A DNA stretch of 64,000 nucleotides from Scyliorhinus canicula. Its lineage: Eukaryota. The DNA lies in NCBI RefSeq assembly GCF_902713615.1, contig NC_052158.1:18844546-18908545 (forward strand). The letters are read 5' to 3'. The notes beneath the pieces are model-generated. The model saw nothing but the letters and a program-made list of their open reading frames with translations. It was not told the DNA's origin and made no database searches. A program made the translations under genes and the position numbers. This document shows positions 155-61,717 of this stretch, in pieces (position 1 is the first letter of the stretch; every line of letters begins with the position of its first letter).

Positions 155-501
155 TCAAACAATTTCAAAACAAATTGAACAGCAACTGCATTCAAATTTA
201 ATGATCAAAAAAGACATTAAAACTTCTTCATCACCTTTGACATTAAGAAATCGACAAGGAGAAGACCAAATCGTCTGACTTTGTGAAATCTTTTTCATAA
301 TTCTAGTGATTGCTGTACAATATAAACACTGCATTTCACATGCAAAATGTTCTTTTAATATTTGCAAGACAATGTTAAAAAGGAGGGAATGTAGTGATCT
401 CTGTATATCAATATACATGATCATTGTATGTAAAACTAGTACAGTCAATTCAACACTAGATGTCTCCCCATCAGGTGGTATAAAAAGTTTCCCCGCTCTT
501 T
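155..501 (-). CDS. Candidate exon 10: cytoplasmic tail (E)[19 protein letters not shown]...
   Basis: Long pyrimidine tract (tctgtcttgtctgttctctctcctg...ctctctcAG) with a phase-1 acceptor in frame with ORF 155..517. The 3' extent is uncertain because the sequence after ~19 codons looks UTR-like. Confidence 0.6.

Positions 502-61717: not shown

Follow-up and report, generated by a model that had tools for sequence, protein, structure and literature searches.

Does the stretch of Scyliorhinus canicula DNA considered here (contig NC_052158.1, positions 18,844,546 to 18,908,545; 64,000 nucleotides, in the following called the window) encode a receptor whose immunoglobulin (Ig) ectodomain, of the kind known from CD2, SLAM and CEACAM proteins, is carried by a membrane domain of five helices? 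The initial annotation had proposed a gene of ten exons that splice into signal peptide (SP)-IgV-IgV-IgC2-TM1..TM5-tail, where TM stands for a transmembrane helix. We report that eight of the ten exons are real, namely SP, V1, V2, C2 and TM1 to TM4. The proposed fifth helix and tail are mis-picks, and the canonical exon for the fifth helix, which begins with KGCEP, is absent from the window. We consider it likely that exons 1-8 of a gene from a multigene CD2/SLAM/CEACAM-like family with a five-helix anchor are located in the window, and that the canonical TM5 exon of this gene lies beyond it or has been lost.

Eight exons and the transcript evidence

The window is repeat-rich vertebrate sequence without gaps. 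Using AG/GT splice sites and phase 1 as the only criteria, the ten-exon model could be rebuilt mechanically on the minus strand, and all ten exons possess AG/GT sites and phase 1 as had been described. The spliced conceptual protein contains a signal peptide, five hydrophobic stretches and seven N-glycosylation sequons, the latter all located in the ectodomain. Both V1 and V2 are devoid of the B and F cysteines that would form the usual disulfide, while the C2 domain has the canonical pair and one extra cysteine. The motif at the end of the C2 domain and the KKFKK cluster after TM3 were also found as claimed.

Five of the exons are part of a public protein model. A HMMER scan with the V2 exon against 1.8 billion cluster representatives recovered P0001, which according to a word-indexed search is the RefSeq entry [quoted passage not shown] with 377 residues. 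P0001 has the organization SP-V1-V2-C2-TM1 and is 100% identical to window exons 1-5, and its gene span of 39.8 kb is consistent with the positions of these exons. It runs past the TM1 donor for 18 more codons until a stop is reached, with the match ending at 21960. RefSeq annotates the locus solely as this shortened protein with one membrane pass and read-through at the TM1 donor. As no gene is called within 10 kb downstream of P0001, TM2 is unannotated, and among the S. canicula proteins compared there was no high-identity match to TM2-TM4.

For the membrane domain we built one hidden Markov model (HMM) per helix exon from the membrane domains of 35 relatives (alignment A1) and searched these profiles against the 1901 six-frame open reading frames (ORFs) of the window. 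The TM1, TM2, TM3 and TM4 profiles each gave one match only, in each case at the predicted exon (E-values in Table 1), so that helices 1-4 are each found on a phase-1 exon of their own that matches the family profile. Single TM exons gave no Pfam match. The order of the exons is mirrored by P0151 of Scyliorhinus torazame, a V-C2-5TM protein: residues 131-468 of the model align to it in a single ungapped block of 338 residues that begins with V2, closes with TM4 and spans five predicted junctions, with a TM1-TM2 junction parallel to that of P0151. Identities amount to 82/102 in V2, 77/90 in C2, 24/37 in TM1, 27/34 in TM2, 35/42 in TM3 and 22/32 in TM4; after the end of TM4 the alignment breaks down. 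The idea that TM1-TM4 are decaying as a whole was dismissed, since they depart from the family consensus at 11 of 34 positions, a number that does not leave the range of intact members. The ten-exon model consequently stands for eight exons, on the basis of RefSeq identity, profile matches and the P0151 alignment, and falls for TM5 and tail; its central idea, an Ig ectodomain carried by a multi-pass membrane domain in which every helix has its own exon, is borne out.

Transcript evidence comes from RNA runs of S. canicula, whose contigs were aligned to positions 4480-4725. The runs contain 0.09-0.13 of the sampled words of 30500-34600; from V2 and C2 by themselves, 516 of the 4071 31-mers (0.127) would be expected. 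In run X3, a contig of 181 bases covers 4555-4652 with no differences (98/98 bases), and this part ends exactly at the predicted TM4 acceptor and donor. On the coding strand its downstream overhang reads AAAGGATGTGAACCACCACCTG, which together with the two preceding bases encodes G-K-G-C-E-P-P-P, the canonical TM5 start, and which differs from the sequence at 2046. Neither of the two overhangs of this contig occurs in the window, allowing up to 3 mismatches. Run X7 has the KGCE overhang as well, on contigs sharing 95-99% identity with TM4. In RNA, a canonical TM5 from outside the window thus follows a TM4 exon whose sequence is that of the window. Since helix exons are joined in series in an RNA contig, they are not mutually exclusive: three TM-type exons follow one another in the X3 contig, and five helices are present in dozens of relatives from RefSeq.

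The family, its cysteines and its relation to known receptors

We found approximately 100 relatives, which are 400-600 residues long and have a C-terminal set of four or five helices; in 43 of them five helices lie within 190 residues. E-values of relatives of P0001 go down to 1e-116. V1 is 43-53% identical to the N-terminal V domain of paralogues. Members occur in sharks (Scyliorhinus, Cetorhinus, Carcharodon, Mustelus, Heterodontus, Heptranchias, Chiloscyllium, Stegostoma, Rhincodon), in rays (Pristis, Mobula, Hemitrygon, Hypanus) and among sauropsids in many birds, including songbirds and fowl, and in the alligator. The idea of a family restricted to cartilaginous fish was accordingly too narrow. 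Three architectures are observed, V-C2-5TM, V-V-C2-5TM (P0244 in the same genome, P0093, P0155) and V-C2-C2-5TM, and the gene in the window shares with them one or more V-set domains without the B-F disulfide, followed by one C2/I-set domain. The five-helix membrane domain belongs to no Pfam family (35 membrane domains searched). Its AlphaFold2 model consists of five long helices with a predicted local distance difference test score (pLDDT) of 82 and a predicted template modelling score of 0.71, and in the AlphaFold DB clusters and the ESM Atlas it matches only its own family above the level of generic bundles; the full-length P0151 model reaches pLDDT 78. Four positions of the membrane domain, W, G, V and C, are near-invariant in 35 sequences.

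Automatic names of the members are inconsistent: they are called uncharacterized or HEPACAM-, CEACAM-, SLAMF9-, CD48-, CD276-, contactin-6- or hemicentin-like. The same kind of annotation that mislabels the genes of the family truncates the present one after its first helix. To call the receptor unrecognised was thus justified as regards its names, which are wrong or empty, and the single-pass annotation of this locus with 377 amino acids; it was not justified insofar as members including P0244 already exist as RefSeq models. Apart from CD47, no Ig-5TM family was described in the literature covered by a limited full-text search. The family is real and widespread, and in the literature searched apparently unnamed and undescribed.

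In some RefSeq isoforms from other loci (P0181/P0187, P0190, P0157/P0158), individual helix exons are left out, or C2 is followed immediately by helix 5. As all exons are in phase 1, skipping of helix exons keeps the reading frame, and it would change the number of helices and the topology. Such isoforms may be real, or they may be artefacts of prediction.

A further characteristic feature is a set of cysteines. The motif DCGxYxC occurs in the membrane-proximal domain of nearly all relatives, from sharks to birds, and places an extra cysteine in the E-F turn, facing the membrane; in P0001 it reads DCGMYTC at residue 298. We compared this to the loop between TM4 and TM5 in 63 five-TM members: 45 of 63 have both the E-F cysteine and the loop cysteine, none (0/63) has the E-F cysteine alone, and P0183 is without both. 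This distribution suggests a disulfide between the two cysteines, and the C2 domain is probably tied to the TM4-TM5 loop in this way.

Regarding the ectodomain, the proposed likeness to CD2, SLAM and CEACAM proteins was supported. The ectodomain of the P0151 model finds its best fold matches in CD48, CD58 and NTB-A, and the Pfam model Receptor_2B4 scores above its cut-off. The nearest sequence relatives of solved structure are CEA (E 9e-48) and CEACAM1 (E 1.7e-26), over V2-C2. With CD2, CD48, CD58, NTB-A and 2B4 the family shares a V-C2 ectodomain of the CD2 type. CD2/SLAM members are single-pass or anchored by glycosylphosphatidylinositol (GPI), and SLAM receptors signal via tails with an immunoreceptor tyrosine-based switch motif (ITSM). 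The present family differs in both respects, as its members have five helices and the ITSM tails are mostly missing: the tails are polar, 25-75 residues long, and 5 of 97 contain loose matches to ITSM-like motifs or to the related inhibitory motif (ITIM). The extra cysteine of the DCG motif is not known as a feature of CD2/SLAM proteins.

An N domain without disulfide followed by C2-type domains is found in CEACAM proteins as well, and several relatives carry the name "CEACAM-like". In contrast to the single-pass or GPI-anchored CEACAM proteins, the anchor of the family is multi-pass. This anchor speaks against orthology to CEACAM1-like genes, which are single-pass, possess an ITIM tail and belong to the CEA locus, and so does the presence of the family in songbirds and fowl, which lack intact CEACAM genes. 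The V-C2 ectodomain is common to HEPACAM, too, and is the basis of the automatic RefSeq name; HEPACAM is a single-pass protein with a long cytoplasmic tail, whereas the family is multi-pass, and its name was set by automatic annotation.

The layout of the membrane domain leads to CD47. CD47 is usually regarded as the sole Ig-superfamily protein with five membrane helices. The family resembles CD47 and the poxviral CD47-like proteins in having an Ig ectodomain on five helices, one exon per helix, and short variable tails; in CD47 the membrane domain is built from five exons, and the cytoplasmic tails are short and variable (PMC10902115). A conserved cysteine in the last outer loop is a second common feature, which in CD47 is bonded to the Ig domain (Cys33-Cys263), a disulfide needed for ligand binding and signalling (PMC10902115). 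Unlike CD47 with its one disulfide-containing IgV domain, the family has V-C2 or V-V-C2 ectodomains with V domains lacking the disulfide, and the Ig-side cysteine of its putative disulfide is positioned in the E-F turn of C2 and not in the A strand of a V domain.

Could the five-helix domain nevertheless be a diverged homologue of the CD47 membrane domain, and the family a CD47 paralogue with a CD2-like ectodomain? The shared layout and the last-outer-loop cysteine with its extra partner in the adjoining Ig domain would be explained by such a descent; the different Ig partner of the putative disulfide speaks against it. So do the searches. None of 35 membrane domains was matched by the CD47 models of Pfam (E up to 10 for PF04549, the CD47 membrane region). 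Among 7 full proteins, PF04549 likewise had no match (E up to 1), and PF08204, the CD47 V-set, gave no more than sub-threshold matches (E 0.063 for the P0002 V domain, E 6e-4 for the P0007 C2 domain). A search of PDB sequences with the family profile (E up to 10) did not recover CD47. Foldseek, run against PDB, Swiss-Prot models and AlphaFold DB clusters, and an exhaustive VIA-align comparison returned generic helix bundles only, e.g. cytochrome b561 and STEAP; CD47 was outside the best 50 both in the Foldseek search of PDB and in VIA-align over 48,161 chains, where it must be kept in mind that helix bundles give many generic matches. We therefore regard homology to CD47 as quite improbable, and the earlier statement that no sequence resemblance to CD47 exists is in agreement with the Pfam, PDB profile, Foldseek, VIA-align and Atlas searches.

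With confidence somewhat short of even, we propose that the gene represents an old, undescribed vertebrate family going back at least to the ancestor of cartilaginous fish and sauropsids, in which a CD2/SLAM-type ectodomain sits on a Pfam-less five-helix domain with a CD47-style disulfide from Ig domain to loop. It could be an independent second invention of the CD47 architecture or the long-lost relative of CD47, and seems to be missing from mammals. What emerges is a second, unrelated-looking family with the layout of CD47, rich in paralogues in sharks and rays and represented also in birds and alligator. Should this hold true, the principle of clamping an Ig domain on a helix bundle either evolved on two occasions or has a far greater age than assumed, and comparative immunologists could use it as an experiment of nature to learn for what purpose CD47 requires a membrane domain.

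A mode of action can be proposed. The protein would be oriented with its N-terminus outside and its C-terminus inside; the KWKK cluster after the proposed TM5, which had been used as an argument for this topology, is lost together with that unsupported helix. The distal V domain without disulfide may make the cell-to-cell contact, as in CD2, SLAM and CEACAM proteins, and the disulfide between C2 and loop would hold the ectodomain rigid on the helix bundle, like Cys33-Cys263 in CD47. As the tails are short and mostly without tyrosine motifs, a classical receptor with an ITIM or with an immunoreceptor tyrosine-based activation motif (ITAM) is less to be expected; the protein could instead be displayed as a ligand or as a marker for adhesion, or could exert its effect via lateral partners of the helix bundle.

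Competing readings of the locus

The canonical KGCEP exon would most likely be located past the left edge of the window, which is only 4.5 kb beyond TM4; alternatively, it may have been lost at this locus. That the gene runs on beyond the window to this exon appears to us an even matter, if anything slightly to be favored. A number of observations weigh against a gene that continues the eight exons with a canonical TM5. The longest RefSeq product ends after TM1. Helix 2 has an arginine at its outer end (AGG instead of TGG), at the position of a near-invariant tryptophan that is shared by at least 90% of the 35 relatives compared, which range from sharks to birds. The upstream overhang of the X3 contig represents a TM3-type end (KFKKTLNTK) that is 5 of 30 bases off the TM3 of the window, and due to this mismatch the contig may derive from a paralogue or an allele with identical TM4. 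Runs X6 and X12 hold words of V2 and C2, yet gave no TM4 contig, an absence which can be false. The loop cysteine and helix 5 were not found in the window, the proposed TM5 being without the cysteine, and the respective exon may lie outside. The proposed disulfide is deduced from conservation only.

Regarding the source of the X3 contig, LOC119976182 (P0244, P0246) has KGCEPPP but was ruled out, as its TM4 is only 72% identical to that of the window; none of the S. canicula proteins compared has both KGCEPPP and the TM4 of the window. In S. torazame, P0151 and P0093 possess near-identical membrane domains and differing ectodomains. Together with an X3 contig whose TM4 is identical and whose TM3 flank differs, this pattern hints that gene conversion homogenises helix exons among paralogues.

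Part of these observations would be expected if the locus were now single-pass, with the 377-residue SP-V1-V2-C2-TM1 protein and its read-through tail as the main or only product and TM2-TM4 as relics of a recent truncation. P0001 stops shortly after the TM1 donor and is followed by 10 kb without a called gene, the canonical TM5 is absent from the window, a possibly degenerate TM5-like frame adjoins a long interspersed element (LINE) insertion, the tryptophan of TM2 is lost, and two runs with ectodomain exons lack a TM4 contig. The share of RNA words over 20960-22140, which is 0.22-0.29 compared to 0.13 calculated for two exons alone, would also fit a read-through. This extra share may however originate from two young copies of a short interspersed element (SINE) in that intron, and contigs prove presence, not absence. 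In TM2-TM4 the frames are still open, the splice sites conform to the consensus and the profile scores are strong, and these exons deviate from the family consensus no more than those of intact members. Neither AATAAA nor ATTAAA occurs in the 900 bases after the TM1 donor; this lack of a poly(A) signal counts against a single-pass locus, while the read-through form is thereby neither confirmed nor refuted. On balance we consider a single-pass locus unlikely.

Considerably less likely still is the ten-exon gene as it had been drawn, in which TM4 is spliced to 2046-1915 and this to 501-155, resulting in a lineage-specific fifth helix and a tail of 115 residues. In its favor all sites are AG/GT and phase-compatible, and a good hydrophobic stretch is followed by KWKK. 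The canonical TM5 exon of the family has (G)KGCEP at its start, and the cysteine therein belongs to the four near-invariant positions of the membrane domain. The TM5 profile found no match among the ORFs of the window (best E 1.3, in a different frame), the proposed TM5 frame has no protein match among 5.8 billion proteins, and it lacks the loop cysteine that is present in 61 of 63 five-TM relatives. A protein with this TM5 would therefore be the sole member with an unpaired E-F cysteine. Both runs with data show a KGCE exon after a TM4-type exon, and not the sequence at 2046. The open frame around the proposed exon extends over 1838-2170 and contains a weak TM5-like pattern at 1928-2062 on the minus strand (GC, HPQ, a hydrophobic run and KWKK). 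Its similarity to the TM5 of P0166 from Cetorhinus could be taken as support, but is marginal (E 7.6e-4 in a 4.5-kb search) and begins upstream, at the GC which the proposed acceptor cuts off. No in-frame acceptor exists for such a P0166-like start, and the nearest upstream AG leads to a frameshift and an early stop. The frame is perhaps what remains of a TM5 exon, possibly one of a second type, that has degenerated. At its other end, the 3' fragment of a LINE (1548-1904, similar to 46825-47197) ends 10 bases from the proposed TM5 donor, whose GT was thus possibly supplied by the insertion. The tail had no Pfam match and no tblastn match from approximately 240 family-related proteins or from 34 family tails. 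In 30 kb scanned, one comparable candidate occurred by chance (6580-6449).

We thus retain the reading of eight exons from a five-helix family gene. The combination of Ig ectodomain and multi-pass anchor had been recognized correctly, the final two exons had not, and the present copy is perhaps partly decayed or not complete within the window.

Positions of the features, repeats and neighboring genes

Table 1. Exons, unsupported frames and SINE copies in the window, with the evidence for each
Feature	Position	Strand	Evidence
Exon 1, SP (start codon, signal peptide; 25 codons + 1 base, phase 1 GT donor)	61642..61717	-	P0001 residues 1-25
Exon 2, IgV domain 1 (type-A V, without B-F disulfide)	44404..44718	-	Pfam V-set E 1e-6; P0001 residues 26-130, 100%
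Exon 3, IgV domain 2 (type-B V, single Cys in "KNRC")	34235..34540	-	Pfam V-set E 1e-9; P0001 residues 131-232, 100%
Exon 4, C2/I-set (extra Cys in E-F turn, DCGMYTC)	30591..30860	-	Pfam I-set E 8e-16; P0001 residues 233-322, 100%
Exon 5, TM helix 1	22013..22123	-	Family TM1 HMM E 6.6e-13, sole match; P0001 residues 320-377 map to 22133-21960
Exon 6, TM helix 2, unannotated	20978..21079	-	Family TM2 HMM E 1.1e-12, sole match
Exon 7, TM helix 3 and cytoplasmic KKFKK, unannotated	10008..10133	-	Family TM3 HMM E 2.9e-16, sole match
Exon 8, TM helix 4, unannotated	4557..4652	-	Family TM4 HMM E 8.4e-10, sole match; RNA contig with both splice ends
Proposed "TM5", hydrophobic open frame, unsupported as exon	1915..2046	-	No family TM5 HMM match, no homologue
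Proposed "tail", 114-codon open frame, unsupported, probably non-coding	155..501	-	No Pfam match, no tblastn match
SINE copies	1181-1375, 4305-4475, 5255-5421, 10419-10591, 21420-21612, 29975-30420, 31242-31408, 32824-32981, 37989-38186, 53988-54207, 59147-59664 and others

The introns contain several kinds of repeats. A minisatellite of approximately 4 kb (12473-16474) in the intron between TM2 and TM3 consists of 21-base units, CCCTCCGCCTCTCTGTTACAG and variants thereof, with additional periods of 42, 63 and 340 bases; it is strongly C-rich on the plus strand, with a GC skew of -0.7. The SINE copies belong to one family, of which at least 16 copies, 70-94% alike, are located in the introns and around the gene, and a second, different SINE-like element is found at approximately 21740-21915. 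The intron between SP and V1 harbors ORFs of LINE reverse transcriptases at 47193-48094 (minus strand) and 56622-57325 (plus strand).

Beyond the window, approximately 7.5 kb upstream of the start codon and on the same strand, another V-set/I-set gene is annotated, with a product of 216 residues that is cut at the edge of the locus. Further members of the family, P0154, P0181, P0244 and P0247, are encoded on the same 163-Mb chromosome, so that the gene is one of several family members on its chromosome.

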